Below, in pieces: positions 4,707-58,040 of a stretch of 64,000 bases of DNA. The translations under genes and the position numbers were made by a program. Each line of letters begins with the position of its first letter. The stretch's first letter is position 1. Below the pieces are notes generated by a model. The model had not been told where the DNA came from. It worked only from the letters and a program-made list of their open reading frames with translations, and did no database searches. The stretch is taken from the sequence record OV032902.1; one strand, 5' to 3'.

Positions 4707-4710
4707 CCTC

Positions 4711-5034
4711 ATGAAAGCTTTATTGGTTTTAGCAGCTACGGCTGCACTTGCAGGATGCACTATTAATGTGACGTATCCAGAAGCACCGGTTGCAGAGCAA
4801 CCAATCATTGTAAATGTACCTGACACTACTCCGCAGGTAATCGAAAAAGAAGTCTATAAGACATGCGACAATCGAGCACTAGACAAACTAGTATCGATGC
4901 AGCGTCCAGACGTACGTCCATTCATGGCAGCAAATGATGCAGTTGGTTATACTAACGCACTAGACAAATTTGCTGACGAAGTTACTGAACTTGCATTAGA
5001 AGCCAAGTTCGAACAATTATCTTGCGGAAAGTAA
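4711..5034 (+). CDS. Outer-membrane lipoprotein spanin (Rz1-like)
   Basis: Signal peptide with lipobox LAG|C, a Pro-rich segment and extra Cys residues. Confidence 0.75.
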   Translation: MKALLVLAATAALAGCTINVTYPEAPVAEQPIIVNVPDTTPQVIEKEVYKTCDNRALDKLVSMQRPDVRPFMAANDAVGYTNALDKFADEVTELALEAKFEQLSCGK

Positions 5035-5035
5035 A

Positions 5036-6400
5036 ATGAAACATGCATTAATCTATACCGATGGTGGCGCTACGCGTGACGAAGAAGTTGGTTATTATTC
5101 TGGTTGGGGTATGTGGGGAAAAGCTGACAATAGCGAAGAAGAAGTTCTTATCTATGCGGCTTGTCCTCATGGCGACTCTAACAACCGTGCAGAGATGCGC
5201 GCTTACATTCGTGCACTCAAGTGGATTATGGAAGAAGAGTTTACTTCTGCTCACTTGATTCTCGATAGTAAATATGTTCTTGACCATAAAGACCACGTTC
5301 TTCAATCGTGGAAAGCAAACGGTTGGTTTACCTCTAAAGGTTTGGCGGTTAAGAACAAAGACCTGTGGATGGCTATTGATACCTATCAGGAAATGTGCCG
5401 TGAGAAAGACATCAAACTAACAGACGACTGGGTTAAAGGCCACAGTGATGTTTACGGTAACGAACAAGCTGATGATGGTGCTACCATGGGTACAGCTCTT
5501 GCAAGAAACTCTGATTTCGAAGAACGCAAGATTAACCCTAAAACAAAAGCTGCTATTGAAGCTGCTGAGAAAGAGAAGCGCAAGAAGACTAAAGCACAAG
5601 ACCCGTTTGCATTGTTATGTGGTCGTCGCATTTTCGAAATGATTAATGCTGAACGAATCACTATCAATGACGAGCGTGCTTACATGACTACATCGTTTGA
5701 CGACACAGACCCAATCAAAGGTCGTGGCTTAGGTGTTATGGCAGGTGAGCGATTTGAAGGTCTTGTTGTTCCGTCTGAACCTATCGCTGCTCTTGATGAC
5801 ATCATTGATTACCAAGAAGAGATTCTTACTGATGCGACTATCCGTCCTGTCTTGTTCTATTGGGATAAGATTAAGTCTGCCCAGACGTGGAAGCAGATTG
5901 CTTTAGATGGACGTGGTTGTTTCCTTAAGAAGCGTAACGACTTAGTGTTCCATGATGGCGCTACACCTATTTCGCAATACCTTGATCCACCTCGTCAAGC
6001 TAGACGTTGTGCCGAGCAGATGGCCAAGCGTAAGGAAATCATCGAGAATCTTATTAAGGACCCTGACACTTATAAGCGTCTTGATGTAACTAACTTGTTC
6101 TTCGAAGAAAACAAGAAAGGCAAGTTAACAATCCGTGAAGACATTGCTAAAGTAAAAGCTGTTCAACATAACTGGGATGTTGACGGACGAGTAGCTAAGA
6201 TTATTATGTCTTTCGATTATGAAATCCCTAATCGCAACGCGTTGGCTAAAGCGTTAAAACAAGGTAAAGATATCAAGTGTGAGTTAATCATCACAGAGCA
6301 GACAGAAAATACTTTCCGTTGGCATCTGTTCGTTGGTACTCCGGTTGGCTATGGTTTGTTTGACAATCCAGCAACTAACTTGTACGTCTTACCACATTAA
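5036..6400 (+). CDS. rnhA: Ribonuclease HI with long C-terminal extension
   Basis: IYTDGG, SNNRAEM, LILDSKYV, KNKDLW and WVKGHSDVYGNEQAD motifs. Confidence 0.9.
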   Translation: MKHALIYTDGGATRDEEVGYYSGWGMWGKADNSEEEVLIYAACPHGDSNNRAEMRAYIRALKWIMEEEFTSAHLILDSKYVLDHKDHVLQSWKANGWFTSKGLAVKNKDLWMAIDTYQEMCREKDIKLTDDWVKGHSDVYGNEQADDGATMGTALARNSDFEERKINPKTKAAIEAAEKEKRKKTKAQDPFALLCGRRIFEMINAERITINDERAYMTTSFDDTDPIKGRGLGVMAGERFEGLVVPSEPIAALDDIIDYQEEILTDATIRPVLFYWDKIKSAQTWKQIALDGRGCFLKKRNDLVFHDGATPISQYLDPPRQARRCAEQMAKRKEIIENLIKDPDTYKRLDVTNLFFEENKKGKLTIREDIAKVKAVQHNWDVDGRVAKIIMSFDYEIPNRNALAKALKQGKDIKCELIITEQTENTFRWHLFVGTPVGYGLFDNPATNLYVLPH

Positions 6401-43233: not shown

Positions 43234-43255
43234 CCTCCTGCCTACGGGCAGGAGG
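43234..43255 (+). repeat. 22 bp hairpin CCTCCTGCC-T(A/T)CG-GGCAGGAGG, also at 55312, 55545 and 56171
   Basis: Four copies identical except one loop base. Confidence 0.85.
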
Positions 43256-43273: not shown

Positions 43274-45439
43274 ATGATTCTTTATTTATCAGATTGGAAG
43301 AAGTATCCAACTGCGATCGTGGATTACGAGACCAAGAATACTTCATTCATTGATCTGGCAGAGACTTATCGAAAGATGGGCATCGTGAACTGTATGTTTC
43401 CTCTGGCACTTATTCAGCCAGAACTACAAGGCGTCGACCCTTTCTCTCCTGATCTTACGCTTCATCAAAAAGTAATGATTGCCAACGAGGCTAAATATAA
43501 CCCGTGGTATTATCTTCGTGAAATTGCTCGTGTTCCTGTATCGGGCTCGCCAGAACCAACTATGTATCTAGCTAACCGTGCAAACGTAGCAATGATGTGG
43601 TGTTTCCTGAATGGTTTCGACTACGCTAACATCATGCCTCGTCAGTGCGGTAAGTCAGTAGGTGCGGACGTTTTGAACAACTGGTTGATTCACATCGCTG
43701 GTAACAACACAGTTATCCAGCTGTTTACTCACTCGAACAAACTACGTAATGCGAACGTTAAGCGTCTAAAAGAAATCCGTGACCTATTACCGGAATACCT
43801 TAACTTCTTTGTTCCTGGTGTTGACCCAGATAACCAAGAACGTATTGCGTGTAAAGCATTGGGTACTGAATACCTCACATCTGTAGCACAGAAAGATAAA
43901 GATGCTGCACATAACGCGGGCCGTGGATTGACGTCTCCGTGTATCCAGGTGGATGAGGGTCCATTCTGTCCTAACATTCATATCAGTCTTCCGGTAGCAC
44001 TTGGTTCAACCGGCGCAGCACGAGACTGGGCAAAAGAACGTGGCACATTCATGGGGAACATCTTTACTACAACCGCTGGTAAGCGAGATAGTGAAGAGGG
44101 TGGTTACATGTACGACCTAATCCATGATGGCATGTACTGGAATGAACGCATTCTGGATTGTCACGGCAAAGAAGCTGCTGAGGCCTTCGTAAGAACTAAC
44201 TCGAAGAACAAAGACCTATTGATGGTCAATGGTACTTTCTCGGCACTGCAAATCGGTAAGACACTTGCTTGGCTACGTGAGAAGATTGCAAACGCCCGTG
44301 GTTCTCGTGAAGATGCGGAACGAGATTATTTGAACATCTGGACATCTGGTACAGATAGTTCTCCTCTAGAAACTTATCTATTGGAAATCATCCGTCAGTC
44401 TGAGAAGGACCCACTGCATACCGAAGTATCTAAAGAAGGATACATGCTTAAGTGGTTTATTCCTCAAGATGAAATTCCACGCCGTATGAACTCTACTCGT
44501 TTAGTTATGACCATCGACTCGGCAAACATGATCGGTAAAGATGGTAACGCGATGACTATCATGGACTTAAAGACTATGGAAGTTGTTGCGACATCAAACA
44601 TTAACGAGGGTTCACTATATCGTTACAACGACTGGATATTCCGATTACTGGCTACCTATGACCGCATGACATTGATCATGGAAAACAAATCATCTGCACA
44701 AGGTATCTTTGATGCTGTTGCTGCTAAGATGATGGCTATGGGTATGAATCCATTCCGTCGTATGTTTAACCGCATTGTTAACGATCGTGCTTCTAATGAG
44801 AAAGCATATACTGAACTTCTTAACCGTGAGCGTCAAGGCATTATTACTGATGACTTCTATGAACGCTACAAGAAGAAGTTTGGTTTCATGACTACTGGTC
44901 TATCTCGTCATACTCTATACGGCGAAGTATTCCAACGTGCTGCTAAGACAACAGGTCACCTAATCTCTTCTGAGGAACTAAGTCGACAAATCCGTGGACT
45001 TGTTATGAAGAATGGTCGAGTAGACCACGAGAAAGGCAAGCATGACGATATGGTAATCTCTTGGCTAATGGGTCATTGGTTTGCTACGTCTGCTGTTAAC
45101 TTGGCATTCTACGGAATCGAACCTGGACTTGTTCAGTCACTTGTATCTGAGGCTGGTGCTACAGTATCGAAAGAAGAACTGGCACACCGCAAAGAACAAG
45201 AAGCTATCATGCAGCAAATCGCGTTCCTTAAAGATCAACTGGCTGAGACTGGTAATGATCTAATGAAACGAGCTGCTGAACTTCGTATTGCTAAACTTGC
45301 CGCTAAACTAGATGACAGCGACCAAGATAAAGTAATGGAAGAACTACTTAACCGTACTCGTGAACAACAGGCAGAGAATCAATCTCTAGCAGATGCTGTT
45401 CGCAAACGTAAACAGCAGAAAGCTGTTGGTTGGTATTAA
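43274..45439 (+). CDS. terL: Terminase large subunit
   Basis: NPWYYLRE, Walker A MPRQCGKS, Walker B IQVDE, C-terminal GKHDDMVIS nuclease motif. Confidence 0.92.
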   Translation: MILYLSDWKKYPTAIVDYETKNTSFIDLAETYRKMGIVNCMFPLALIQPELQGVDPFSPDLTLHQKVMIANEAKYNPWYYLREIARVPVSGSPEPTMYLANRANVAMMWCFLNGFDYANIMPRQCGKSVGADVLNNWLIHIAGNNTVIQLFTHSNKLRNANVKRLKEIRDLLPEYLNFFVPGVDPDNQERIACKALGTEYLTSVAQKDKDAAHNAGRGLTSPCIQVDEGPFCPNIHISLPVALGSTGAARDWAKERGTFMGNIFTTTAGKRDSEEGGYMYDLIHDGMYWNERILDCHGKEAAEAFVRTNSKNKDLLMVNGTFSALQIGKTLAWLREKIANARGSREDAERDYLNIWTSGTDSSPLETYLLEIIRQSEKDPLHTEVSKEGYMLKWFIPQDEIPRRMNSTRLVMTIDSANMIGKDGNAMTIMDLKTMEVVATSNINEGSLYRYNDWIFRLLATYDRMTLIMENKSSAQGIFDAVAAKMMAMGMNPFRRMFNRIVNDRASNEKAYTELLNRERQGIITDDFYERYKKKFGFMTTGLSRHTLYGEVFQRAAKTTGHLISSEELSRQIRGLVMKNGRVDHEKGKHDDMVISWLMGHWFATSAVNLAFYGIEPGLVQSLVSEAGATVSKEELAHRKEQEAIMQQIAFLKDQLAETGNDLMKRAAELRIAKLAAKLDDSDQDKVMEELLNRTREQQAENQSLADAVRKRKQQKAVGWY

Positions 45440-45449
45440 AAAGATAAAG

Positions 45450-45475
45450 CTCTACTGGCCCGAAGGCCAGTAGAG
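45450..45475. terminator. Terminator between convergent genes
   Basis: CTCTACTGGCC-CGAA-GGCCAGTAGAG. Confidence 0.75.
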
Positions 45476-45479
45476 TTTC

Positions 45480-46697
45480 TTATCTGTATGCATTTAGTGT
45501 TAGCATTCGAATAGCAACATAAATCATAGCTGCGATACGACAGGCAGTCTTAATAGACTCACGAGCAGTAGGGATAGATTCCTCTACTAGTTCAGTATAG
45601 TGTTCTTTCAAGTCCAAAGCATCTTTCTTCTTAATGCGGTTTGCACGGAAGATATTGCGAAGACGAGAAATGATCTCAGGAGCATTATTTAGATCTAGAC
45701 GGCCTTGACGTGCTTCACTGATGACGAATACTACTACTTTGCGAATACTCTCTTGGATGTATTCTTGTGAACCCACGTTGTCCGTCATATATTCCAGTAC
45801 CTTGCGAAGATGTGTTTCTTCAGCGGTTGAAATAACATCAACTGTAATGTCAATGATTTCTGGACGGATAAAGTTACGAGGGTCACGGGCCATTACTAGC
45901 ATCTCTTTTACAAGGGCGCGTTCACGGTTAACATATTCAGCGAGAACTTTCTCACCTTCGATGTTAGTTAATGCAGAGTTAAGAACCAGACGATCAGAGT
46001 TGTTCTTGATGTCGTGGTACTTTTCAGTCAACAAGTTTATTTGGCCCGCTAAGCGGTCCTGAATGTCGTTAACCATATAGACGACCTGTTTATCGTCTTT
46101 CATGTCTTGCCATACTCTACGACGCGTGTGGATGCCTTCTTTTGGATCTAGCATCGTTAGAGAAATAGCTCGAATCATATTCAACCAGTTACCATGTCTT
46201 TTTAACAGGGACTTGTTATCTAGTGATTCATAAAGTTGCTGTGCGATGATTTCATCACTTGGAAACTTGAAACGGTGTGACAATAACGAACACATATGTT
46301 TTGCGATGTTCATTACTAGAGTCATAACCAAAGCTTCATCTTTAATGCGTTGATCAAGCTTAGCCTGATTAATGCGGTACAAAAGATAAACGAATGACAG
46401 GTTGACGATATCACTACTTACTCGGAAGTCTTTATTGATGTCTGGCAAGTTAACTAGTTCTTGCTGACACTCACGAATCTCTTCGATGTTCATTACGTCT
46501 TCTAGCCAGGCACGTGCATCGGCTGGAATGTATCGTACGGGACGAACACCTACTAAGTTACCACCGAAGTGGGCAGTGTGTACATCGTTCTTGTTAATGA
46601 AACCGTAGACATAGAATTGAAGCTTCGTAAGAAAGTTCTTATCGACGTTAAGTTTAGTGTATGCGTCAAACACGTCACGGACGGATTTATAAGCCAT
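45480..46697 (-). CDS. Conserved virion-associated protein (phiKZ-like)
   Basis: 405 aa with GAGGGAG RBS; FGGNLVGV motif. Confidence 0.55.
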   Translation of the reverse strand: MAYKSVRDVFDAYTKLNVDKNFLTKLQFYVYGFINKNDVHTAHFGGNLVGVRPVRYIPADARAWLEDVMNIEEIRECQQELVNLPDINKDFRVSSDIVNLSFVYLLYRINQAKLDQRIKDEALVMTLVMNIAKHMCSLLSHRFKFPSDEIIAQQLYESLDNKSLLKRHGNWLNMIRAISLTMLDPKEGIHTRRRVWQDMKDDKQVVYMVNDIQDRLAGQINLLTEKYHDIKNNSDRLVLNSALTNIEGEKVLAEYVNRERALVKEMLVMARDPRNFIRPEIIDITVDVISTAEETHLRKVLEYMTDNVGSQEYIQESIRKVVVFVISEARQGRLDLNNAPEIISRLRNIFRANRIKKKDALDLKEHYTELVEESIPTARESIKTACRIAAMIYVAIRMLTLNAYR

Positions 46698-46759
46698 GAT
46701 GTCTCCCTCGGTGGCTGTGTTTTTACTATACTATTTAACGATTGAATGATTCCCTATCT

Positions 46760-46768
46760 CTATATTAC
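46760..46768 (+). promoter_or_regulatory. Early promoter motif CTATATTAC
   Basis: See the copy at 11532. Confidence 0.7.
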
Positions 46769-46851
46769 CAATATGGATGTCCAGTGATAAACTCATATAT
46801 GCTTGCGAGTATATATCATGATTATCATTTTACTAAACTAAGGAAACTATC

Positions 46852-47559
46852 ATGAACTACGAACACTACGTGCATCAGCACATTATAGAAATGATTGAAA
46901 GCGGTAAAGCTAAAGGTCATACTCTAATTATTGACCCGGCACTTTATGGTGCTCTTAATCATACCATTCCAAACCACGACGGTGACATTATCTTTGTCGG
47001 CTTTGATAAGATATCACCACTAGAGATCATAGAACGCTCTGATACGCCCCTGAAGGTAACGGGAAGTATTTGGGCATATGAATGTGTGGTTGCAGAAATA
47101 CAAAACGATATGAGCTCTGTGGGCGGCTTAAGATTAATCCACTCGGACTTGATTCCTAAGTATCGTATGAACTACTTACCTTTTCCGATTTATATGGATG
47201 AGGAAAGCTTTGAGTTTTATCGTGATCAGCGTAAACGAGGAAACAAGAACTTTAACAACAATACAGTTATTCTACAAGACAATGAAAAAGTCTCAAAGGA
47301 ACTGGATGCGCTGTTAGAGCGTGCGTTAAAGATAGATGTTATCTCATACTTGATTTCAACGGAACCTACAATAACGTTAAAAGAAACAGAAGCGGGAATT
47401 CAGATAGAAGGAATTAACATTAATTTATCTGGTCCCCAAATCTATGACTTCACTGGCGTTTCAAATATTAAAGGTGACGTTGTCATGTATAACGATTTAG
47501 CACAAAAATTCGGCAACGTAAAAGTGGAGGGTCAGATAGCAGTCGTCAATAGGTATTAA
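46852..47559 (+). CDS. Hypothetical protein
   Basis: 235 aa with AAGGA RBS. Confidence 0.6.
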   Translation: MNYEHYVHQHIIEMIESGKAKGHTLIIDPALYGALNHTIPNHDGDIIFVGFDKISPLEIIERSDTPLKVTGSIWAYECVVAEIQNDMSSVGGLRLIHSDLIPKYRMNYLPFPIYMDEESFEFYRDQRKRGNKNFNNNTVILQDNEKVSKELDALLERALKIDVISYLISTEPTITLKETEAGIQIEGININLSGPQIYDFTGVSNIKGDVVMYNDLAQKFGNVKVEGQIAVVNRY

Positions 47560-47560
47560 G

Positions 47561-47878
47561 ATGATCTATACTGAGCTTAAAAAACACAAACTTGTAATAG
47601 TCGGTCAACACTTCTTTTGGAGAGGCGCTTTTCACCAACGCATAGGTGCGAACGTCTTCTCTAATGTTGATGAGATCGAAGCATTGTTTATCCAAAACGG
47701 ACAGATGCACGAAGATTACAATATTCTTCAAAACCACGAAGATCCAGTTGTGCGTAAGTTAGTAGCAATGAACTTGGAAAGCCTTCCTTATTTAGTTAAG
47801 GATTGTGATCCAGCTGTTGCTCTACTTGCGCGTGACTATCTTGCTTGCCGGCCTCGTGCTGGCGTTGTTGTACTCTAA
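47561..47878 (+). CDS. Hypothetical protein
   Basis: 105 aa, coupled. Confidence 0.55.
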   Translation: MIYTELKKHKLVIVGQHFFWRGAFHQRIGANVFSNVDEIEALFIQNGQMHEDYNILQNHEDPVVRKLVAMNLESLPYLVKDCDPAVALLARDYLACRPRAGVVVL

Positions 47879-48026
47879 CTTTTCTTTTTTGTTTGAAGGG
47901 AGGCTTCGGCCTTCCTTCTTATATTCTTTTCTTAAAGAACAAACGACAAATATTATGTGAGAAAAGCATTGAAGCGTATATGACACATCTGCGCTTTTTA
48001 AGATTACATCAAAAGGAGAACCCATT

Positions 48027-49061
48027 ATGTCTTGGGGAAATCAACGTCGTGGAGGCGGCGGTCGCCGTGGTGGTGGTAACTTTACACCTAAGCCTCGTCC
48101 ACAACTACCAAAAGAACACGAACTTCATCCACTAGCGGAAATCGCATGTAAGCACGAAAACAAAGCTCTGTTACGTGACTACGGTACACGCGGTGAAGAA
48201 GTATCTAAAGAAACTGTTATCTTGGATGGTGACTCTCAACGTCGTCCTATTCCTGTTCCAGTTGCTGCAATGTTCAACACAATGCAATTTGGCGTTCCAA
48301 TGAATCACCCTGAGTTTCCTTCTATCCAGAAGTTCAATACTCTAGGCGAATCAAACGCTTACTATGCTCGTTACCAATCTCCTATCATGTGGATTCATAA
48401 CGACGAAAACAATGACTTCCGTCATATCCCTGGTTTTACTCGTTACGTTGTCGATAAGCATCGTCGCATTCTAAATGCACACAACGGTATGAAAGTAGAG
48501 CCTATGTCTAAGTACATGATCGAACTTGTTCCAGATGGTCCGACTAACAAACTAGTTAAGACTTCTATTGATCAAGTAATGAACTTGGCATACACTGCAC
48601 TACCTGAAGACTTTATTGACTTCGGTTTCCGTACTTACTCACACGACTTCGGTTTGAATCTAGAAGGCGGTCAAGTAGGTTGGGTAGCTAAAGGTAAAGT
48701 AAAAGTTAAGAACAATGACGTTGGCATGGTTGCTGAATACAGTAACTTACCTATGTTCATGAAAACTTCTATTGCACCTAAGGACTTCCAAATCATGCAA
48801 GATATCAACCAACAAGCTTGGAAAGGCTTTAATGGTGGTGTTATCAATGCTGGTCCTTATTCTATCCGTGAATCACTTCCATTTGTTCAACCACCTGAGT
48901 TACCTCGCGTCGGCCAAACAGAAAGTGCACCACAACAAGATTCTTTTGATACAGCTCCACAAGAGCAACCTCAACAGCAATCACAACCACAGCAACAACA
49001 GCAGCAACAAGCGGCTCCTCAACAAACTGAAGACATTAGCTTCGACGATATTGAGTTTTAA
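48027..49061 (+). CDS. Putative nucleic-acid-binding protein: RG-rich N-terminus, NUMOD4-like segment, Q-rich linker, SSB-like acidic tail
   Basis: MSWGNQRRGGGGRRGGG; FRHIPGFTRYVVDKHRRI; QQQQQQQAAPQQTEDISFDDIEF. AAGGAG RBS. Confidence 0.6.
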   Translation: MSWGNQRRGGGGRRGGGNFTPKPRPQLPKEHELHPLAEIACKHENKALLRDYGTRGEEVSKETVILDGDSQRRPIPVPVAAMFNTMQFGVPMNHPEFPSIQKFNTLGESNAYYARYQSPIMWIHNDENNDFRHIPGFTRYVVDKHRRILNAHNGMKVEPMSKYMIELVPDGPTNKLVKTSIDQVMNLAYTALPEDFIDFGFRTYSHDFGLNLEGGQVGWVAKGKVKVKNNDVGMVAEYSNLPMFMKTSIAPKDFQIMQDINQQAWKGFNGGVINAGPYSIRESLPFVQPPELPRVGQTESAPQQDSFDTAPQEQPQQQSQPQQQQQQQAAPQQTEDISFDDIEF

Positions 49062-49225
49062 TATAATACCTGTCTCCTTCGGGAGGCAGGTAGTTCTTCT
49101 TATTTTTTTTTTTTGCCAAAAAAAAAAAGCTTCCCGACCCGAAGGCCAGGAAGAAAGATTTTAACCACTGGGAGAACAACAATAGTTTCCTATTGCCTCA
49201 TGTTCAACGACTAATAAAAGTCATA

Positions 49226-50776
49226 CTATTTGGTTGCAAGAAGGAAAGTTTCTATAGCGAACAGATCTTCTGGGTTTGCACCATAGACCGTCATAATGTT
49301 ACCGTGACGCGGTTCAGCTAATAGCGCACCCTTCTCTTCAAAGATATCGTTGTTTAGAACATGATGGATTATACGCACCTTAGGTGACTTACCAGTAACA
49401 TAAGCATCAAGTGCATTTAAGAATGCCTCATGTTGACGTACAGTAAAATCACGTTCCGCCACATATACTTTCTTGAATTGTACCTGAGATGCATTTAGAA
49501 TATGGAACATACCGGTACTCTGCATCAACTGCATACCTTTGGTGAAAGTAGGAAGATGATACAATAGATCATCAATGTGTACAGGTTTAACATCTAATGG
49601 GAAAAGACCTTCGCCACAGATTGCTAGATTCCCGCCTAAACGATATGCTTTGTCATAAGCATGGATGACAGGTATTTCGTTATCGCTTTCGTGTTTAAGG
49701 AAAACAAGAGATGCAGTATCTTCTTCTCTTTCAACTGGAAGAGAATAGTAAAGATTTGACATTTCATCAACGAGAGTATCGAACCCACCTTTCTTTCTAA
49801 GCATCTGACGAATAACCAGTAGATCGACCGGATGCATCTGTTGACGTTCAATCCAACCTTTCATCAAGAAAACAATTCGATCTGCATGTGCGTCTGACAA
49901 GAAGTCTGTTAGACCAACTTGAAAACGAACGCGCCATTCTTCATATGACATAGAGCCACTAAAGAACATGTGTTCCATGAACTTAGCATTTTGCTGTAGT
50001 TCTTTACAGTATACCTTAGAAGGGAATGTAACGCCTTTGGAGTAATTGATTGCTACATGGATACTACCTGCCGCATTCCAATCGAGCTGATTGATCTCGT
50101 TAAGTATACGGAACATCATTGGAACTTCATTAGGTTCACCACGGTAGCCTTTCACAATACGCAGACATGCGTCTTGTACATCATCACTGCCACGCAAATG
50201 CAAGCGACGTACAAGATTACGGTGGCTAAATGTAATGCTTTCTTTTTTAAGTGAATTTTCACGAAACGTCACCGTTACCTTTCTATTGATAAGAACATGC
50301 TCAACCATCTTACGAGGGTCCATCTGTAAATACCACTCACCAAGGATTCGTTTAACACTTCGTCCAAAGCCACGGTAGTACGAGATCAAAGCCGCAAAGG
50401 TTAAGATGTCTTTGCCGTTCATAGAGATAGCGACACCAGTATTCATTGCATAAGAGGTCAGCTTTTTATCTTCCGCTTTGGAAAGCTTAGCTAGTACATG
50501 CAGAGCATGATTAGTATATGCCCCTGCTTCAGAATAGATATGAGGGAGTTCGTTAATCATCTTGACGATATCCCAACCATCATTTTCTATTGCTTCATGA
50601 AAACCATTAAAGGCTCCATCATCGAAAACGCCATCCAGGTCAGCACGAAGAGGTAAGTTGCTGCCGGATACAATATAACGAAGGACGAGTTCTTTCGCGA
50701 TGATTCGATTTCTTTGCTCCAGCATTGACTTAAAAGTTGCCCAGCAAAAATCTTTTTGTTCTTTTGAAATTTCCAT
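49226..50776 (-). CDS. rsr: Divergent Ro60/Rsr (TROVE + vWA) RNA-binding protein
   Basis: 516 aa with colinear matches to recalled Ro60: LRYIVSGS, GFGRSVKRILGEWY, FSHRNLVRRLH, ALDAY..KVRII..LAEPRHGNIMTVYG. MIDAS DxSxS is not evident. Confidence 0.75.
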   Translation of the reverse strand: MEISKEQKDFCWATFKSMLEQRNRIIAKELVLRYIVSGSNLPLRADLDGVFDDGAFNGFHEAIENDGWDIVKMINELPHIYSEAGAYTNHALHVLAKLSKAEDKKLTSYAMNTGVAISMNGKDILTFAALISYYRGFGRSVKRILGEWYLQMDPRKMVEHVLINRKVTVTFRENSLKKESITFSHRNLVRRLHLRGSDDVQDACLRIVKGYRGEPNEVPMMFRILNEINQLDWNAAGSIHVAINYSKGVTFPSKVYCKELQQNAKFMEHMFFSGSMSYEEWRVRFQVGLTDFLSDAHADRIVFLMKGWIERQQMHPVDLLVIRQMLRKKGGFDTLVDEMSNLYYSLPVEREEDTASLVFLKHESDNEIPVIHAYDKAYRLGGNLAICGEGLFPLDVKPVHIDDLLYHLPTFTKGMQLMQSTGMFHILNASQVQFKKVYVAERDFTVRQHEAFLNALDAYVTGKSPKVRIIHHVLNNDIFEEKGALLAEPRHGNIMTVYGANPEDLFAIETFLLATK

Positions 50777-50806
50777 GGTTTGTCTCCTTAGGAAAAAATA
50801 ATAAGC

Positions 50807-50826
50807 AGGACGACCGAAGCCGTCCT
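50807..50826 (-). terminator. UUCG hairpin with U-rich tract just upstream of the Ro60 RBS
   Basis: Minus strand AGGACGGC-TTCG-GTCGTCCT, then GCTTATTATTTTTT. Confidence 0.6.
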
Positions 50827-50840
50827 ATCTTACTATCCCC

Positions 50841-50949
50841 TGAGCTAGTGCGCGGATAATACCTACGCAGTACCCCAGAGTAAACGAGCGAGGTTTGAGA
50901 ATGAGGCCAATTCGCCACGCCGGTATATGGCCACACTCTCTTCAGCTCA
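50841..50949 (-). ncRNA. Candidate Y RNA-like (tRNA-like) RNA upstream of Ro60
   Basis: 7 bp terminal stem UGAGCUG/UAGCUCA; internal stem GAGAGUG..GGCC/GGCC..CAUUCUC; 3' hairpin UGCGU-A-GG/CC-GCGCA. G-U pairs favour the minus strand. Confidence 0.5.
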
Positions 50950-51066
50950 ATTGTTCGGGTGTCTTAGTGGTTGTACATCCAGTAAGACTTGTACTTATGA
51001 AATTTTTAATTTAGAGGTCTATCTAAATAATTGGCCATGCACATTATTTTGAATGCAATTAGATTT

Positions 51067-51075
51067 CTATATTAC
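51067..51075 (+). promoter_or_regulatory. Early promoter motif CTATATTAC
   Basis: See the copy at 11532. Confidence 0.7.
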
Positions 51076-51111
51076 CATATTGCCTATTCACCTATAACAA
51101 AGGAGGTCGTC

Positions 51112-51732
51112 ATGAAAGTTCCATTTGAATTACCGTTCGCTTGCACAAAGGGTGCACATATTTCACCCAGTGGAACTATTCAATACTTCGAACCTTACCG
51201 GGCTATACAGTTGGCTTACATGATCTATCGTCATCTGGCCGAGAATGTCAATGAACCAGAAGTTTATATTACAACGGTTCTATGCAATATGACTCCTCGC
51301 TACATTGTGTCGATTTGTAAACCGTCAAACCTCGGTGACTATGATTGCTTTATCATGGAAAAGGTTAAGTTATCAGAAAAATCTAACAAGCTAACTCAGG
51401 TCGTCCTTTTATGGGAAGAATCAAAAGAAGCTTGTGAGATGCCAGCAATTGCAGATCGATATTTTATCGCGTCTGATATCACGCTAGCTAATCTGATAGA
51501 TACTGTACGTGAACCAGAGTCTAAGATTTATCCTTGGCTAGATAAACGCATGTCGATTATCTTTGCTGGCTACTCGCTAGAAAACGTTTCTGCGACCGGT
51601 TATGCATCCGTAGCTAAGCCGTTCTTCGAAGACAAAATGGTTGTGGCAGTACCACTGACGCATGATGCGTCTTACTTCAAACACAAATGGGAGATCAGCA
51701 ATGTTCGGAATGCCGACAGCGAAGATGTATAA
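51112..51732 (+). CDS. Hypothetical early protein
   Basis: AAGGAGG RBS before MKVPFEL. Confidence 0.6.
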   Translation: MKVPFELPFACTKGAHISPSGTIQYFEPYRAIQLAYMIYRHLAENVNEPEVYITTVLCNMTPRYIVSICKPSNLGDYDCFIMEKVKLSEKSNKLTQVVLLWEESKEACEMPAIADRYFIASDITLANLIDTVREPESKIYPWLDKRMSIIFAGYSLENVSATGYASVAKPFFEDKMVVAVPLTHDASYFKHKWEISNVRNADSEDV

Positions 51733-51883
51733 AATCATCGTCGATGAACGCAAATGTCCTAACTGCGAAAGTAAATTAGACTACGGTCTAGACGCAGGTG
51801 ATAATCGAGAGGTTATGGCTTGCGGTACTTGTGCGACTTGTTGGACAGTTGATCATGGGAGCAAGACTGTTACACGGGGGTAA
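51701..51883 (+). CDS. Small zinc-ribbon protein
   Basis: CPNC...CGTCATC; GGAG RBS. Confidence 0.55.
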   Translation: MFGMPTAKMYKIIVDERKCPNCESKLDYGLDAGDNREVMACGTCATCWTVDHGSKTVTRG

Positions 51884-51884
51884 C

Positions 51885-52256
51885 ATGATCTGCGATAAAC
51901 TGGGAATCACCATCAAAATGGTTGGTGGCATTTGTCCGATTGAATTATTCATTATCTTTTCTCCAGTCGTTATCGGAGTTACAGCGGGATTCTTTATCTC
52001 TCGCTATATGGAAGGCGACGTACTGAAGAAAGCAGAATTGAATGTCAAGATGGCTACAACAATGACAAAAGACGTGAAGCGTGTCTTCATGGAAACACTT
52101 GTCGAAACCGGGGATAAAGAAAAAGCTAACGAGGCCTCTCATGTCGTATGGCTTAGTTACGCTAATCAGCATCCCGAAAACAAACTCATACAGGATTACG
52201 TATATCAAGTCGATACATGTAAACTGTATATTCGCTATAAGGAAAGATGTAAATGA
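51885..52256 (+). CDS. Small membrane protein
   Basis: TM segment LFIIFSPVVIGVTAGFFI; GGGGG RBS. Confidence 0.55.
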   Translation: MICDKLGITIKMVGGICPIELFIIFSPVVIGVTAGFFISRYMEGDVLKKAELNVKMATTMTKDVKRVFMETLVETGDKEKANEASHVVWLSYANQHPENKLIQDYVYQVDTCKLYIRYKERCK

Positions 52257-52579
52257 TTGACTTACTTGTATTGCTTGTTATTGTCTCGTTCTTTTTATAC
52301 GACGGCATTGAAGCAAAAGTTTGTCAACGTCTTCTTAAGAAAGCTCGGTCCGATTGGGCCGAGCTCTTAATTGATGTTGATCAATTAGCAGAAACAGCAG
52401 CCATGACTTGGGAGTATGAAAAAGGTAAAATGCTTTCCATGAAGCTGGCAGCTCAGCGTCTAGATAAACACGCATTTGTAATGAAGCGCTTGCACGTAGG
52501 TACTCCAACGGAAATAGAGAACCGCTTCGCTTCTACTTATAAACTATCGTTAGGAAAACACAGAGAATGTTCGAACTAA
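52253..52579 (+). CDS. Small membrane-anchored protein
   Basis: N-terminal TM; AAGGA RBS. Confidence 0.55.
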   Translation: MIDLLVLLVIVSFFLYDGIEAKVCQRLLKKARSDWAELLIDVDQLAETAAMTWEYEKGKMLSMKLAAQRLDKHAFVMKRLHVGTPTEIENRFASTYKLSLGKHRECSN

Positions 52580-53034
52580 CTCTTATTTGCATTGTCATAG
52601 TTATTCTATGCCTTCCCCGCATTTACAACAAGTGGCGCCCACTTATTAAACCCTGCGACTTCGCAGCTGTTTACTATGCCACTAAACAAATCTACCATAC
52701 TGCTCATGCGATCAGTAAAGGTAGTCCACACCCACAGTCATACGATCGAGTAATGAACCAAGCATTCACGTCTGTGCTTCGTTTTAAGAGCGAAGAACGT
52801 ACAGAGGTATATGAGGCTTACTCACGTATAACAAAAGCATTCTGGAGATATCAAGATGTCTATTCTACAAAGTTTAAGTACCGCAACCCATCTCAGCGTT
52901 TTCGAGATCATCATGTTAGCGAGTGTCGTTGGTGCCGTATTGTTCTACGTCGCACTATCGGAGTGGCACGATCGTTACCAGGAACGTTCAAGAAAGCGCT
53001 TCTTCGATTGGCTGGATTCAAAGGTAAACGATAA
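52567..53034 (+). CDS. Small membrane-anchored protein
   Basis: N-terminal TM; AGGA RBS. 3' part overlaps the next gene. Confidence 0.5.
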   Translation: MFELTLICIVIVILCLPRIYNKWRPLIKPCDFAAVYYATKQIYHTAHAISKGSPHPQSYDRVMNQAFTSVLRFKSEERTEVYEAYSRITKAFWRYQDVYSTKFKYRNPSQRFRDHHVSECRWCRIVLRRTIGVARSLPGTFKKALLRLAGFKGKR

Positions 53035-53215
53035 CGTGATCGCTCTGTATCGCAATACAGACAACTTTAAGAAGTATCACGACTATGTCATTACCGAAGC
53101 CGGAAAAGCCGGTCTCTTCGACAACCAGATGTATTGTCGATGGATAGCTAATGACGGCATCAATCTCTTATGGAAGGATCTTCCATTCACTGCAAAACTT
53201 GTGTCTGAAAAGTAG
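52856..53215 (+). CDS. Small membrane protein
   Basis: TM segment IIMLASVVGAVLFYVAL; GGAG RBS; ends at a terminator. Confidence 0.55.
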   Translation: MSILQSLSTATHLSVFEIIMLASVVGAVLFYVALSEWHDRYQERSRKRFFDWLDSKVNDNVIALYRNTDNFKKYHDYVITEAGKAGLFDNQMYCRWIANDGINLLWKDLPFTAKLVSEK

Positions 53216-53261
53216 GGGCTTCGGCTCCTACTTATTTTTCACCCTAACCGAGGAAACTATA

Positions 53262-54056
53262 ATGGGTAAACGTCAACTATATGTAATCATTGACATGTTG
53301 CACAACCGCTTTAAAACGCACATGATTCCATATCATGCATGGGCGCTCATCCTTCCATTAGGTAGACAGCCTGCTGAATTCCTGGCAGCTGATTATATCC
53401 ACAATCGCTCCGACGATGCTAAGTCGTTTTTGGTTAGCATGACGTCTCTCTTTAACTCTGGTCCAGCAGAACCAAAAAAGATCGAGTTTAAAATCGAGCG
53501 CGATGGTAGCAACATCAACCTGTTTGCATCAATAGAAAACAAACGACTAGGCGCACTTACATTTAATCTTGAGCGTTCAATCATAGAGTTTGAATGTAAT
53601 GACCGTCATGTGGAGTTCATCATTGACGAGGACGAGTTGGTGGTCAGCGGCAATGTATCTGAGTTCGTAGAAGATAACCATCATAACTCTACGTTGAATC
53701 CGATTGGTAACTGGAAGAAGGACGGCTATCGACGTGGCGTTGGTGTAAACTCTTCCTGGAAGATCAAAACCACAGAGTGTTATTCTGATGTCGGTTCTTA
53801 CGCACAGGCTATTATTGCACACAGTGCTAATAATGAGCGTTTCGCTATCGTAGAACGTAATAGTCAGACTCATGCTCTGAAAGAGATCACTATCAACTAC
53901 GATGGTGGTTCATGGATGCTCTATGCACTAAACGAACAACACATGCAGGTTACGATCACTTCTTCAGAAGACACAGAGAATACTTCTTGTGTTCCTCTAG
54001 TGTTCGATATAAATCGTCAATACGTAGGCTATGGATATCCTGTACCTGAGCTCTAA
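53262..54056 (+). CDS. Hypothetical beta-rich protein
   Basis: GAGG RBS before MGKRQLY. Confidence 0.6.
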   Translation: MGKRQLYVIIDMLHNRFKTHMIPYHAWALILPLGRQPAEFLAADYIHNRSDDAKSFLVSMTSLFNSGPAEPKKIEFKIERDGSNINLFASIENKRLGALTFNLERSIIEFECNDRHVEFIIDEDELVVSGNVSEFVEDNHHNSTLNPIGNWKKDGYRRGVGVNSSWKIKTTECYSDVGSYAQAIIAHSANNERFAIVERNSQTHALKEITINYDGGSWMLYALNEQHMQVTITSSEDTENTSCVPLVFDINRQYVGYGYPVPEL

Positions 54057-54158
54057 TTAATCTTTTTTAACAGAGCAGATAACTAGATTAGGACAATTAA
54101 ACTCACCTAGAGGGGGGAGGTTAATTATGACCGTTAAACCAGTCAGAAAGGACAAAAG

Positions 54159-54665
54159 ATGTTTACACAATCTAAACAAGTAAAGTACTCACATGAAGAT
54201 GGGAAGATGCTATTCGGAAAGAGAATAGATCTAGCAGCTACTAGTCGATACCGTATCGAGGAAGATGCAAGACTAGCTCCACTCATCCAGCTAGTAGATG
54301 TTAACGTTAACTACGAGATCGGTGATCAAGAGTTTACCTTTAAGACAAACGCTACTGCTAGACGCAATGCAACGTTCCATACAGCTATGGGATCTTCAGG
54401 TAAGTTTCTAGAGATCGAATTCAAAGAACTCATCGACGACGAAGTCGCTCGTATGTTGTTTGATGAAGGCTTTAATCCTACCGAGATCTCTAAGCTACAT
54501 CTCTGCTTTACTATTAAGGCAGAAGTAGATGAGAACGGTATAGCTTTTGCTGAAGTTACTAAGCTACGTTTCATGGGTACAACTGATACAGTTAAGAAAG
54601 CTACTAATGCTCGTATTAAGTTACAAGACACTAGTTGGTATCATCTAAGTGCTACATTCATCTAA
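54159..54665 (+). CDS. Hypothetical protein
   Basis: 168 aa with AAGGA RBS, followed by a terminator. Confidence 0.55.
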   Translation: MFTQSKQVKYSHEDGKMLFGKRIDLAATSRYRIEEDARLAPLIQLVDVNVNYEIGDQEFTFKTNATARRNATFHTAMGSSGKFLEIEFKELIDDEVARMLFDEGFNPTEISKLHLCFTIKAEVDENGIAFAEVTKLRFMGTTDTVKKATNARIKLQDTSWYHLSATFI

Positions 54666-54889
54666 CTAACAGGGTAGTCTCTTCGGAGGCTATCCTTACC
54701 TCTTTCTTCTTAATCTTTTTTTTTTCATTTGGTTAAAAACATGACAGTCTAATTCTTTGGTTTGGGGGAACCTTCTAGGAGGGGGCAATTAGCGTTAATC
54801 TAAGCAAAGGTTAAGGGCCTACTAGAATAGTAGACTTAAGCTAGCTATAGATAGAAGCTAACTACCTACTAGAGAATACCTACTTGCCT

Positions 54890-55013
54890 AATTATGTAGG
54901 AGTAACTGGCTAACAAGTAAGACGACGACTTGATTAGCATGAAGAGCTTTTACTCCTTGTCTCCTTTGGGTAGCTCCTGGCCGAAAGGCTGGGAGTACTA
55001 TCTTTTATTTTTT
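54890..55013 (+). ncRNA. Array cassette 0: candidate sRNA (~115 nt)
   Basis: TAC-N10-AATTATGTAG; AGGAGTAA/TTACTCCT stem; unpaired TCTCCTTT; GAAA-loop terminator plus T tract. Confidence 0.6.
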
Positions 55014-55025
55014 ACGTCGTGGCGG

Positions 55026-55350
55026 AATATTATGAATCTCATGGAGTGACTCATCGAAAGAACTGTATAGCTCATACTCTACAGTCAGAGAAATTCCATT
55101 TTCGTATCATTTAACTAATAAGGGCATTGCTCTTTTTCGTTACTTGTATAGACTAACTGTAATTATCAGTCATTGGCTCTAGGGGACGGGAACATCCCTT
55201 AGACAAACCTTGCAGAAGATGAGTTTAATTTCGTAATAGTCCGAGCAGGACCATTGCAATTTAGCATCATTTAGATTAACCTCCATTCTTTTGCACAATA
55301 TATTGGGAAAGCCTCCTGCCTACGGGCAGGAGGTTATTCTCGATCTTTTT
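55026..55350 (+). ncRNA. Array cassette 1: candidate sRNA (~315 nt)
   Basis: TAC-N10-AATATTATG; stems ACTGTA/TACAGT and TCTAGGGGA/TCCCTTAGA; AACCTCCATT; TACG terminator. Confidence 0.6.
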
Positions 55351-55364
55351 ATACATGCAAGTAT

Positions 55365-55582
55365 AATAGTATGACAATCCTCCATCGTTTTGATTTTGTT
55401 AACTCAAAATTGGCATAGTTTGTCACTCTGAAAGTTGTTTATAGTTGTAATAGTAATCCAGCAAACTCACAAACATTTATTGTTCTGTAGTGTTGCTTCC
55501 TGTACCGCTGGATTATAGAGTAAGATGTAACGCTTCTCTATCTGCCTCCTGCCTTCGGGCAGGAGGTATTGTTCTTTTTTAT
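55365..55582 (+). ncRNA. Array cassette 2: candidate sRNA (~210 nt)
   Basis: TAC-N10-AATAGTATG; TGACAA/TTGTCA stem enclosing TCCTCC; TAATCCAGC/GCTGGATTA stem; TTCG terminator. Confidence 0.6.
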
Positions 55583-55592
55583 TGGGTCGTGT

Positions 55593-55785
55593 AATATTGT
55601 AGTAAACATTAGTCGTTTACTTTTACCTGAATTAAAGAATAATTAGTAGTCCCATAAAAGAAACAGATCTAGCCATTTGTCTTTCACCTGAACACACCAT
55701 GGGACTTTACACTCGCTAGTCAAGGCGATTGTGTCGAGCAACTGATATCTCTCTGGCCTTCGGGTCAGGGAGCTTATCAATTTTT
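55593..55785 (+). ncRNA. Array cassette 3: candidate sRNA (~185 nt)
   Basis: TAT-N10-AATATTGTAG; GTAAAC/GTTTAC and AGTCCCAT/ATGGGACT stems; TTCG terminator. Confidence 0.6.
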
Positions 55786-55798
55786 AACGCCTGCACCT

Positions 55799-56024
55799 AA
55801 TATTATAGTAAAGTCCTCCTGCATGATCAATTTATGTTGCTTTACGTTTGAACCTTCATGCTACCATAGCGGTTGTTTTGTTGTTTCTATTTTCATTATA
55901 AGTTCCTTAAGTTATTTGAGTACAACTCCTTCTGGTTGTTTGACTCGCGTTAGTACAGACGCGGTCAGAGTTAATGGGTGCTAACCTCCTGGCCTTCGGG
56001 TCAGGAGGATTAGTTTTATTTTTA
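55799..56024 (+). ncRNA. Array cassette 4: candidate sRNA (~220 nt)
   Basis: AAC-N10-AATATTATAG; GTAAAG/CTTTAC stem enclosing TCCTCCT; ACAAC/GTTGT stem with TCCTTCTG loop; TTCG terminator. Confidence 0.6.
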
Positions 56025-56035
56025 CTCATGTATCT

Positions 56036-56207
56036 AATATTATGAACTGCAATGGATCTCTTTCGATATCTTTCTGTTTTTCATTTATTAATTCTTGTTA
56101 TAAGTAAGTTGACTCCTGTGCGACTTATGGCTGAGGAAGTACAACCTCGTGCCTCGGGTTTAAGGTTACACCTCCTGCCTTCGGGCAGGAGGTGTAATTA
56201 TTTTTTA
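56036..56207 (+). ncRNA. Array cassette 5: candidate sRNA (~165 nt)
   Basis: TAC-N10-AATATTATG; TAAGTTG/CGACTTA stem with ACTCCTGTG loop; TTCG terminator. Confidence 0.6.
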
Positions 56208-56218
56208 CATCGTTGTGC

Positions 56219-56335
56219 AATAATGTAGTAAGGACCACAGCCATGATTCTTGCAAGTCTACGAGTACGACGTAGGCGATTCTCTTTGTCTTGGAAAGTCT
56301 CGGCCTTCGGGTCGGGACTAATCCTTTTATTTTTA
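56219..56335 (+). ncRNA. Array cassette 6: candidate sRNA (~110 nt)
   Basis: TAC-N10-AATAATGTAG; GTCTACG/CGTAGGC stem; TTCG terminator plus T tract. Confidence 0.55.
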
Positions 56336-56422
56336 CACCAAAATTAACGAAATAGTATGGAGTATATTTTATCACAGCGATAAGGTACTTCACATGTCTT
56401 TATCTAAAATAGGGTATAACTT

Positions 56423-56701
56423 ATGGGTTATGTACTACTAGCTGTCGTGTGTTTCGTTTATCTATGTTACCGCATAGAAAGACGAAGTATGAGAATCGAG
56501 CTAAACCAAGAAAAGACTGTGTTGTTCAGTAAGCTTAATACTATTCAAGAGGCACGTTCGTGGTCTCCTGAAAAGGCAACGCAGAAAATTCAAGGGATAT
56601 TAGCACAAGAGAATCGTACTGGCTTGACATCACGATTGACGACCTGCGTCACCGATGAAGAGATTCATCGTGTGTGTCATGGTAATAGTTGTAAAGTGTA
56701 A
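56423..56701 (+). CDS. Small membrane-anchored protein
   Basis: N-terminal TM, 92 aa. Confidence 0.5.
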   Translation: MGYVLLAVVCFVYLCYRIERRSMRIELNQEKTVLFSKLNTIQEARSWSPEKATQKIQGILAQENRTGLTSRLTTCVTDEEIHRVCHGNSCKV

Positions 56702-56743
56702 GGCTAAAAAGAAATTATAACCATTATAAAATATTAACGAGGT

Positions 56744-57139
56744 ATGGCTATGGGCAGTTATGGTTGGATAGGTCTCGCCTTTATTGTTCTACTTGCAGGT
56801 ATATTTGCGTATCGCTCATACAAGAGTAAACTTGCAGAAGTTATGGAAGAACATAAAGAGAAGATGGCCGAGATTAAGGAAGTCACAAAGGAGGTAGAGG
56901 TTGCCACGGAAGATACGGATGAGGCATCATTGTACATTGGATTGTTCGTTGTATATGCTAAAGATCACGTGGCGGCTACTGGAAAGAAAATTTCTAGTAA
57001 CCGATTGAGCGCGATCGAAGCTAAATTCCGTGAAGGTTACCAAACCTTTATGTCGCGTGAACTTCCAGAAATGGAACAACCGTACAAAAGAATTAAAGCA
57101 GCTCTTCGAGATGCTGGCCTTATGGTAGACAACAAATAA
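56744..57139 (+). CDS. Membrane-anchored coiled-coil protein
   Basis: N-terminal TM; GAGG RBS. Confidence 0.55.
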   Translation: MAMGSYGWIGLAFIVLLAGIFAYRSYKSKLAEVMEEHKEKMAEIKEVTKEVEVATEDTDEASLYIGLFVVYAKDHVAATGKKISSNRLSAIEAKFREGYQTFMSRELPEMEQPYKRIKAALRDAGLMVDNK

Positions 57140-57178
57140 TAAAGTCCCTCTCCCTTCTGGGGAGAGGGCTTTAATTGT

Positions 57179-57940
57179 TTAACGTGAAATTCCCCAACGA
57201 GCAATGCGGTTAGCCTGCTTGCGGTCATTGAGAAGCATCTTCTTAGGAATAGCATCAAGCAGTTCTTCGTAGATGTCTTTCTGGTCTGAGTAACTATCAA
57301 TAGTCGAACGAACGTAATCAGACGGCGCACCACCGAACGATTCACCATCACCTATCTTGTTAGCTAGCTTAACATGGATAAGGTGCTTAGCAGCTGCTGT
57401 GCAGAGCTTAGCGATGTCTCGTTGGAAACGTGGGTTGATATTCTGCAAGTTCTCGTCATGCTCTAGATTAACACGAATGAAAGAGTTCCATCCGATGGAG
57501 TGCTCATAGATAGCAATAGTATTCGGGGCTACAATCTCAGTACGTGCTGTACCAGTCGCTTGTGGGCCCATTGTCGCCTCGGCTAGAACTTGTGTCAAGG
57601 AAGCGTCACCCATACCGCCATCCGCATATCCGTGCTCTACAGAATGCACGGCCGTAATGCGTCGACCGTGAGTACGTGTTAGAGGGATGCGATATACATG
57701 AGCGTTATTGATCTGCTGGAATGGCAAATCATAAATCGGAATTCTTTCAGCCTGACCACTTACGAGGTTCAGGTCGGTCATAACGTAATCTCGGATAACT
57801 TCATTTTCAATGTAGTATTCCAAGTTATACGTATCGTAGGCGTGCCATTGATCACGTGGTCGAAACGCACGTTCTAGCAGATTAATATCAATGTCTGTCA
57901 TGACTCGTTTGATACAATAGCCAATGCAGCTATGGTCCAT
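57179..57940 (-). CDS. Conserved virion-associated protein (phiKZ-like)
   Basis: 253 aa with AAGGAG RBS. Confidence 0.55.
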   Translation of the reverse strand: MDHSCIGYCIKRVMTDIDINLLERAFRPRDQWHAYDTYNLEYYIENEVIRDYVMTDLNLVSGQAERIPIYDLPFQQINNAHVYRIPLTRTHGRRITAVHSVEHGYADGGMGDASLTQVLAEATMGPQATGTARTEIVAPNTIAIYEHSIGWNSFIRVNLEHDENLQNINPRFQRDIAKLCTAAAKHLIHVKLANKIGDGESFGGAPSDYVRSTIDSYSDQKDIYEELLDAIPKKMLLNDRKQANRIARWGISR

Positions 57941-58040
57941 GACTCACTCCTTATTTTCTCGTCATTTTCAACGGCGAGCCCTTATTATATGTAGGCTCAC
58001 ACTATTTGCCGTAATGTTGCAAATCATCGTATTTTGATTT

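Follow-up and report, generated by a model that had tools for sequence, protein, structure and literature searches.

What is made from a stretch of a jumbo phage genome in which no gene is annotated, and do the short RNAs predicted there act on translation? The question is raised by positions 54666–56422 of the window, that is, of the whole 64,000-nucleotide stretch of DNA analyzed here. The window is identical in sequence to Vibrio phage vB_VpaM_sm033 (OV032902.1, 320 kb; hereafter sm033), and window positions correspond to record positions minus 124000. Its record lists genes for a nuclear shell protein and for several beta-like subunits of RNA polymerase, and genes for chimallin and a divergent DNA polymerase are present on related contigs, which is why sm033 is regarded as a nucleus-forming phage with multisubunit RNA polymerases of its own. 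The un-annotated gap is flanked by a gene of 168 amino acids (aa) and a 92-aa gene. About eight short plus-strand RNAs are predicted from it; the predicted products are R0b and R1 to R6, followed by the mRNA of the 92-aa gene. A family search with the small open reading frames (ORFs) of the gap gave no match.

According to a first-pass annotation of this DNA, the array RNAs carry motifs complementary to the Shine–Dalgarno (SD) sequence and may silence translation initiation on host mRNAs or time phage genes. As far as the sequence can tell, R0b makes such a role plausible, with a phage gene instead of host mRNAs as the likely target, while for the other RNAs it is unproven. The explanation favored here, tentatively as a whole, is that the gap encodes a battery of small RNAs (sRNAs) whose motifs form a mixed group: the R0b motif would act as an anti-SD seed on the phage gene SM033_00207, and some of the others would pair within their own RNA.

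Anti-SD motifs and the conserved RNA R0b

The same locus was found, via protein search and contig look-ups, in the published phages pir03 and C-ZP2022, where it lies between a Ro60-like gene and the 92-aa/DUF7484 genes, and in L006, L007, and L008, three phages assembled from public reads. All five related phages encode chimallin. In sm033, the eight motifs named in the first-pass annotation lie exactly at the positions given for them, and R3 and R6, taken to be its cassettes 3 and 6, hold no CCUC, CUCC, or UCCU, in agreement with its remark that a clear CUCC is lacking there. It had made the proposal depend on a motif frequency above that of shuffled sequence, and such an excess was found. 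Overlapping anti-SD 4-mers occur 21 times in the RNA bodies compared to 10.4 in dinucleotide shuffles (P=0.002), whereas their SD-like complements on the same strand are not enriched (10 vs 12.5) and tend toward depletion in several arrays. Distinct CCTCC/CTCCT sites outside the terminators number seven in sm033 (1.4 expected, P<0.002), nine each in pir03 and C-ZP2022 (2.9 and 3.0 expected, respectively), and three in L006 (0.8 expected); the count is borderline in L008 (3 vs 0.9) and not significant in L007 (2 vs 1.4). When five arrays were pooled, CTCCT ranked 5th and CCTCC 9th of 1024 5-mers. Since most other pyrimidine-only 5-mers were not enriched, the excess is not a general polypyrimidine effect. 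It is real, strand-specific, and shared by relatives, and thus fits a function on the RNA level. The same pooled arrays are also strongly enriched in CATCG (13 vs 2.4) and in GCTAG/AGCTA, and CATCGTTTTG is found in R2 of sm033 (55384) and in one pir03 RNA.

CCUCC/CUCCU are truly over-represented on the transcribed strand, but the motifs themselves are a mixed group. Their placement "often in loops" did not hold up: in local folding, the unpaired probability of the motif 5-mers (mean 0.23, median 0.07) equals that of the background (mean 0.17, median 0.08; Mann–Whitney P=0.42), and those at 54961, 55378, 55498, and 55814 are individually predicted to be open. The proposed proximity of CAT, which would face a start codon, is marginal, with a CAT in ribosome binding site (RBS)-like spacing at 7 of 34 sites compared to a background of 10% (P=0.048).

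One cassette, R0b (54896–55013), is conserved in six of six phages. It comprises its own promoter-like box, a hairpin with a GACGACG loop, a variable second hairpin, the sequence UCUCCU, and a terminator. The GACGACG loop of the first hairpin is invariant; its stems differ across four lineages and yet still pair, and the covariation includes the replacement of C-G by U-A between pir03 and C-ZP2022. UCUCCU, the first of the motifs (54960), is invariant in the six phages and lies 8–15 nt ahead of the terminator. Its 5-mer is predicted to be unpaired with a probability of 0.33–0.55 in all six orthologs (background mean 0.17). UCUCCU is the exact complement of AGGAGA, the commonest extended SD in sm033 (31 occurrences compared to six of AGGAGG; 291 ORFs). 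In L007, L008, pir03, and C-ZP2022, a CAU facing the AUG is located 5–7 nt upstream of it. For the complement of the GACGACG loop, the sm033 genome holds four other sites (2.4 expected in all), none of them in a start region.

The single-stranded part of R0b was compared with the predicted start regions of each phage. In sm033, the longest contiguous helix falls on the start region of SM033_00207 (14 bp, rank 1 of 269, next best 12). This gene encodes a 354-aa protein of phrog_3938 and is located about 9 kb downstream, just outside the window, between the DNA polymerase and chimallin genes. Its ortholog is the best of 21 start regions in both L007 (10 bp) and L008 (12 bp) and the best of 17 in the L006 sample (12 bp), so that the same ortholog ranks first by helix length in four of the six phages and is weak in two. 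The helix extends upstream of the SD in sm033 and L006 and downstream toward the AUG in L007 and L008. Of the two differences between sm033 and L006, one lies in the mRNA (U-A to U-G) and the other in the sRNA (G-U to A-U), and a base pair is retained in each case. The leader of the 354-aa gene (compared at L015 2983–3025, L021 2960–3000, L007 2200–2238, and L008 2280–2318) is better conserved than the protein, with four differences in 40 nt between sm033 and L021 against 69% protein identity, which hints at a regulatory role of the leader. The Ro60-like gene was also considered as a target and rejected: it shows a 10-nt perfect match to R0b in sm033 and L006, but ranks only 13/269, 2/15, 8/21, 22/27, and 14/14 by energy.

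From these data, the motif of R0b is most likely a working anti-SD seed. Positions 54957–54972 would pair with the SD region of SM033_00207, in some relatives also covering the AUG, and would thereby block ribosome entry and set the timing or the amount of the 354-aa protein. For the motifs at 55278, 55378, and 55814, a partner within the same RNA is more likely, namely the terminator's 3′ arm, which contains GGAGG; the remaining motifs may be seeds for other targets such as host mRNAs. Because R0b is predicted to pair best with the same phage gene in four phages, the timing of a phage gene is favored over host silencing for this RNA. Pairing with an RBS is plausible for R0b, given an invariant and open UCUCCU complementary to the SD and a recurring ortholog, and has nothing beyond the motif excess in its favor for the other RNAs.

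Several observations weigh against this account. Outside R0b, the motifs are mostly not kept in position even between closest relatives (the motif at 55278 is missing from the orthologous RNA in L006, the closest relative of sm033, and conservation between pir03 and C-ZP2022 is mixed), and as a group they are no more accessible than the background. In pir03 and C-ZP2022, the pairing with the 354-aa gene is weak and in two parts (SD and AUG; −12.5 and −13.1 kcal/mol), which would place it in the lower part of the ranking when set against the energies of other pir03 start regions. By duplex energy, the sm033 target ranks only 6th. A shuffled seed finds a 14-bp partner in some start region in 29% of trials, and the case for the target therefore rests on the recurrence of the same ortholog; this ortholog was picked out after inspection of the lists (rough corrected P ~1e-3 to 1e-2), and because sm033 and L006 as well as L007 and L008 are related pairs, it represents at most three independent lineages. 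Scans of R0b and R1–R6 as whole RNAs against 269 phage start regions gave no partner beyond shuffles. Finally, the start points of the RNAs are guesses from sequence. The pairing of R0b with SM033_00207 is accordingly put forward as a good testable prediction rather than a result.

A bolder version would make the array a clade-wide, fast-evolving sRNA battery whose exposed CU-rich stretches imitate the ribosomal anti-SD and reprogram translation, R0b gating the gene beside the chimallin gene and lineage-specific RNAs hitting host start regions for shut-off or counter-defense, with an arms-race turnover of the cassettes. We consider this version unlikely.

Transcription units of the array and related loci

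The array contains eight plus-strand intrinsic terminators, and a 4-kb scan found ten terminator-like sites where 2.1 were expected. Downstream of each terminator come first a T-run and next an AT-rich box with TATG, TGTAG, or TATAG at its end. Seven of the boxes fit a tight pattern that was found only in the array within the 64-kb window. When a position weight matrix (PWM) trained on these same seven boxes was run over the whole genome, strong matches were confined to the array, and weaker ones lay upstream of protein genes including structural ones. The eighth box (54887–54899) and a variant box (54747–54760) were recognized through comparison with relatives. Sigma-70-like sites are not in excess in the array (9 vs 9.0 expected). 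With eight boxes, eight terminators, and no annotated or family-matched ORF, the array RNAs would each form a transcription unit of their own, as expected of anti-SD sRNAs, and are probably transcribed by a phage RNA polymerase from their own AT-rich box and ended by the intrinsic terminator. The predicted sizes of R1 to R6 are about 315, 207, 185, 217, 162, and 108 nt. The features, all on the plus strand and with predicted RNA ends, are as follows.

54671–54696, plus strand: terminator of the upstream 168-aa gene (hairpin and T-rich tail); left border of the array.
54747–54885, plus strand: variant box (54747–54760) and conserved leader with a G-rich box (54764–54785), a second box (54789–54800), and CTAG-rich repeats to about 54885; same elements in the same order in pir03, C-ZP2022, L008, and the more distant relative L011.
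54887–54899, plus strand: promoter-like box of R0b, of the same type as the other seven; orthologous in five relatives.
54896–55013, plus strand: candidate sRNA R0b, with hairpin 1 (54908–54938), invariant loop (54918–54929), predicted seed (54957–54972) with TCTCCTTT, and terminator (54973–54996) followed by a T-run; conserved in six phages, with covarying stems and an accessible seed.
55009–55349, plus strand: box (55009–55034) and predicted RNA R1 (about 55035–55349), with AACCTCCATT at 55278 and terminator 55312–55333.
55346–55580, plus strand: box and predicted RNA R2 (about 55374–55580), with TCCTCC at 55378, GCTTCCTG at 55495, and terminator 55543–55568.
55576–55786, plus strand: box and predicted RNA R3 (about 55602–55786), with terminator 55749–55772 and no anti-SD motif.
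55782–56024, plus strand: box and predicted RNA R4 (about 55808–56024), with TCCTCCT at 55814, TTCCTT at 55903, TCCTTCTG at 55927, and terminator 55985–56008.
56019–56206, plus strand: box and predicted RNA R5 (about 56045–56206), with ACTCCTGTG at 56112 and terminator 56164–56199.
56202–56335, plus strand: box and predicted RNA R6 (about 56228–56335), with terminator 56296–56319 and no anti-SD motif.
56330–56422, plus strand: last box and 5′ leader of the 92-aa gene (56423–56701); right border of the array.

For phiKZ-like phages, early promoters are described as an AT-rich box of about 10 nt near −10 with a T-rich upstream part, and late promoters as TATG (PMC7598289, PMC8244752). The array boxes show both early features, yet four of the seven PWM boxes end in the late motif TATG; they thus appear to combine features of phiKZ-type early and late promoters. 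The leader at 54764–54885, with its G-rich box, a conserved 12-mer, and CTAG/ATAG-rich repeats, is common to pir03, C-ZP2022, L008, and even L011, and is conceivable as a protein-binding or origin-like site. Other sites in sm033, for example, 43234–43255 of the window, carry exact copies of terminator hairpins from the array as their own terminator-like hairpins, which suggests a small repertoire of terminator sequences in this phage. Long antisense matches of the RNA bodies to the phage genome were also searched for and discarded, as only such re-used terminators were found.

The RNA bodies diverge far faster than the neighboring proteins. Between sm033 and L006, whose DUF7484 proteins are 87% identical, only the boxes, the terminators, and a few pieces can be aligned, and the number of cassettes varies among the phages. 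In L011, the leader is kept, but in place of the array there is non-coding, GC-richer sequence of about 900 nt that contains one terminator (reverse strand, about 4449–5300; also in L010). Rfam gave no match for this stretch, which could represent a large structured RNA. Vibrio phage BONAISHI has no array. Searches of IMG/VR and Joint Genome Institute (JGI) metagenomes for further relatives, using the 92-aa protein, the DUF7484 protein and its alignment, and the G-rich leader pattern, found nothing. The four relatives L003 (3870–3960), L004, L007, and L008 carry another conserved RNA-like element, a hairpin with a conserved GGATAACTCTGGAT stretch and a T-run behind it, that was not seen in the printed arrays of sm033 or L006.

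Elsewhere in the sm033 genome, 13.7 kb (record positions 305433–319196; L017 18434–32195) are free of annotated genes and tandem repeats, and no ORF there exceeds 169 aa; this represents either a large non-coding region or a section of the assembly with many errors. At record positions 69620–72950 (L013 19620–22950), nrdA is annotated as two pieces with an HNH endonuclease gene between them, the pattern expected for an intron or intein-type insertion.

Other explanations of the motifs

The CU-rich stretches could instead be platforms for proteins. The RNAs would then serve the phage Ro60-like protein and host partners (the KH/S1 domains of PNPase, Hfq) as Y-RNA-like tethers or sponges, with the GACGACG loop as the Ro60 contact and UCUCCU as a single-strand protein site. 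We consider this doubtful. The Ro60-like gene (516 aa, 49226–50776, minus strand) lies about 4 kb upstream of the array and keeps its position relative to the array in all relatives. The ten best matches of its predicted structure in the Protein Data Bank (PDB) are all Ro60/TROVE proteins, including phage Ro60 (E 4e-8 to 3e-4); the model, however, is of low confidence (pLDDT 58, TM 0.25–0.29). The pir03 record annotates the counterpart as TROVE-containing, an annotation left unsupported by Pfam and PDB sequence searches of the 516-aa protein, which gave no TROVE match; nor was there any PHROG match. The protein evolves fast, with 39% identity to the L006 version where the neighboring protein has 87%.

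The contact motifs of Ro60 are GNCGAAN0-1G and CGAA (PMC4201824, PMC12135203), and in vitro binding to host PNPase has been reported for a phage Ro60 with Y-like RNAs (PMC12135203). The R0b loop GACGACG is one base away from the first of these and, by this one mismatch, does not match it. In BONAISHI, two YrlA matches adjoin the Ro60-like gene (L018 2836–2947 and 3030–3149, minus strand; E=8e-12 and 5e-5, both below the gathering score); they lie directly upstream of the "RNA binding protein" ORF49c and are unlisted in the annotation of the record. BONAISHI thus has Ro60 and YrlA yet no array. With these two hits as the positive control, the YrlA covariance model gave no match at E up to 5 in 45000–58000 of the window. 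A tRNA-like module was likewise not found in the window by ARAGORN, nor was there a match to the tRNA clan of Rfam. A Y RNA should be encoded on the strand of the Ro60 gene and no more than 4 kb from it (PMC4201824), but the array lies on the plus strand, opposite to the Ro60-like gene, at a distance of 3.9–5.6 kb.

The usual position of a Y RNA, adjacent and on the same strand, is already held by another conserved non-coding RNA (ncRNA) candidate. This candidate (50808–50986, minus strand), directly upstream of the Ro60-like gene, has an array-type box, a CGAA hairpin (50905–50932), and a terminator (50808–50825), and is present in all six phages. It has no YrlA match and is possibly a divergent Y RNA. 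The Ro60 context therefore makes a protein platform conceivable for the array, though with the canonical Y RNA position occupied. For a protein sponge of the CsrB/RsmZ type, GGA motifs repeated in loops would be expected; GGA-containing and SD-like k-mers are not enriched and often depleted.

A second explanation, improbable as a general one, is that the motifs act inside their own RNA by pairing with the terminator's 3′ arm, in which GGAGG occurs, and with the nucleotides that follow, as a 5′–3′ clamp or an alternative to the terminator that affects termination or stability. The R1 motif (55273–55284) is 92% complementary to 55329–55340 beside its own terminator, and in the minimum free energy (MFE) fold the 5′ end of R2 pairs with bases just after its terminator. 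Over 21 cassettes, the duplex energy of a body with its own 3′ arm is below that of shuffled bodies (mean z=−0.62, P=0.03). The effect is small, with four strong cassettes (R4 of sm033 with the motif at 55814, z=−2.5; R5 of sm033, z=−3.2; one in L007 and one in pir03) and nothing in the other 17 of 21. The conserved motif of R0b shows no pairing of this kind (z=−0.2), and self-pairing leaves unexplained that UCUCCU is invariant while the terminators vary in sequence between the phages.

It is equally unlikely that the motifs have no function of their own and are what is left of terminator 5′ arms after duplication, together with a selection that disfavors SD-like sequence in RNAs not meant for translation. 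Genome-wide, terminator stems are built as CCTCCTG...CAGGAGG and recur as identical copies, and one body motif resembles a terminator 5′ arm; the depletion of SD-like 4-mers in several arrays and the fast turnover of the RNA bodies also fit such an origin. Decayed hairpins, however, should leave both arms, and only the CU-rich side is in excess. Moreover, UCUCCU of R0b stayed invariant in six phages, while the neighboring RNA diverged almost beyond alignment.

That the RBS-like reverse complements are real and start tiny minus-strand proteins (for example, GGAGG, 9 nt, and ATG on the minus strand at 55284–55268, followed by a 23-codon frame), or that leaderless plus-strand peptides are made (a frame in pir03 and C-ZP2022 stays in phase across a 3-nt indel), is very improbable, as terminators and boxes are exclusively on the plus strand, no small ORF of the gap has a family match, the plus-strand frames lack an SD in T-rich sequence that gives hydrophobic frames in any phase, and the same pir03/C-ZP2022 stretch also carries hairpin-preserving changes; the minus-strand frames, short and missing from the closest relative, were rejected.

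Comparison with known systems

An Rfam search with permissive thresholds over the window and seven related loci assigned none of the array RNAs to a family, and nothing reached the gathering score in the whole window; the best match was RsaF with 24.5 bits compared to a threshold of 60. In Staphylococcus aureus, RNAIII and the Rsa RNAs are sRNAs that pair with SD regions through C/U-rich seeds. R0b resembles them as a stand-alone RNA that ends in an intrinsic terminator and has a pyrimidine-rich stretch, predicted to be exposed, that complements a target SD. In contrast, it is unrelated in sequence and structure, encoded by a phage, and active, if at all, in a Gram-negative host; its seed would be a linker next to the terminator instead of a hairpin loop, and its predicted target is a phage gene.

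Among phage sRNAs, the c4 RNA of P1/P7 is complementary to the RBS of a phage mRNA, and VpdS of VP882 is a Vibrio phage sRNA acting on phage and host mRNAs (PMC12197685). R0b is likewise phage-encoded and predicted to be complementary to the RBS of a phage mRNA. Whereas c4 and VpdS are single genes of temperate phages, about eight tandem RNA genes are predicted here in a jumbo phage of strictly lytic type. A review of phage sRNAs mentions neither jumbo phages nor tandem RNA genes (PMC12197685), and no description of a tandem sRNA battery in jumbo phages was found in the literature searched.

The sRNAs of phiKZ and the phiKZ-like phage 201phi2-1 are short units in which a phage promoter is closely followed by a terminator (PMC11512511, PMC8244752). 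The array shares with them the virus family and, as predicted, the short promoter–terminator units; early promoters in those phages are described as an AT-rich −10 box with a T-rich upstream part. Their sRNAs, however, are scattered and mostly derived from 5′ untranslated regions (UTRs), and neither a multi-gene array nor an SD-complementary seed has been reported for them. With the Ro60/YrlA modules (PMC4201824, PMC12135203), the locus has in common a Ro60-like gene near small structured RNAs and, in R0b, a CGA-containing loop that resembles the contact motif. It differs in that the array RNAs fail the YrlA model, have no tRNA-like domain, lie on the other strand, and end in terminators instead of a 5′–3′ stem.

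Exploration of small RNAs in strictly lytic and jumbo phages has barely begun. If R0b indeed masks the RBS of a conserved gene adjacent to the chimallin gene, it would provide a first case of translational timing by RNA among nucleus-forming phages, whose mRNAs must exit the phage nucleus for translation. The prediction is concrete, with one RNA, one seed, and one target leader, and the comparative signal is already visible. The Ro60-like gene with its candidate Y-like RNA would add a second RNA-centered module within the same 7 kb.

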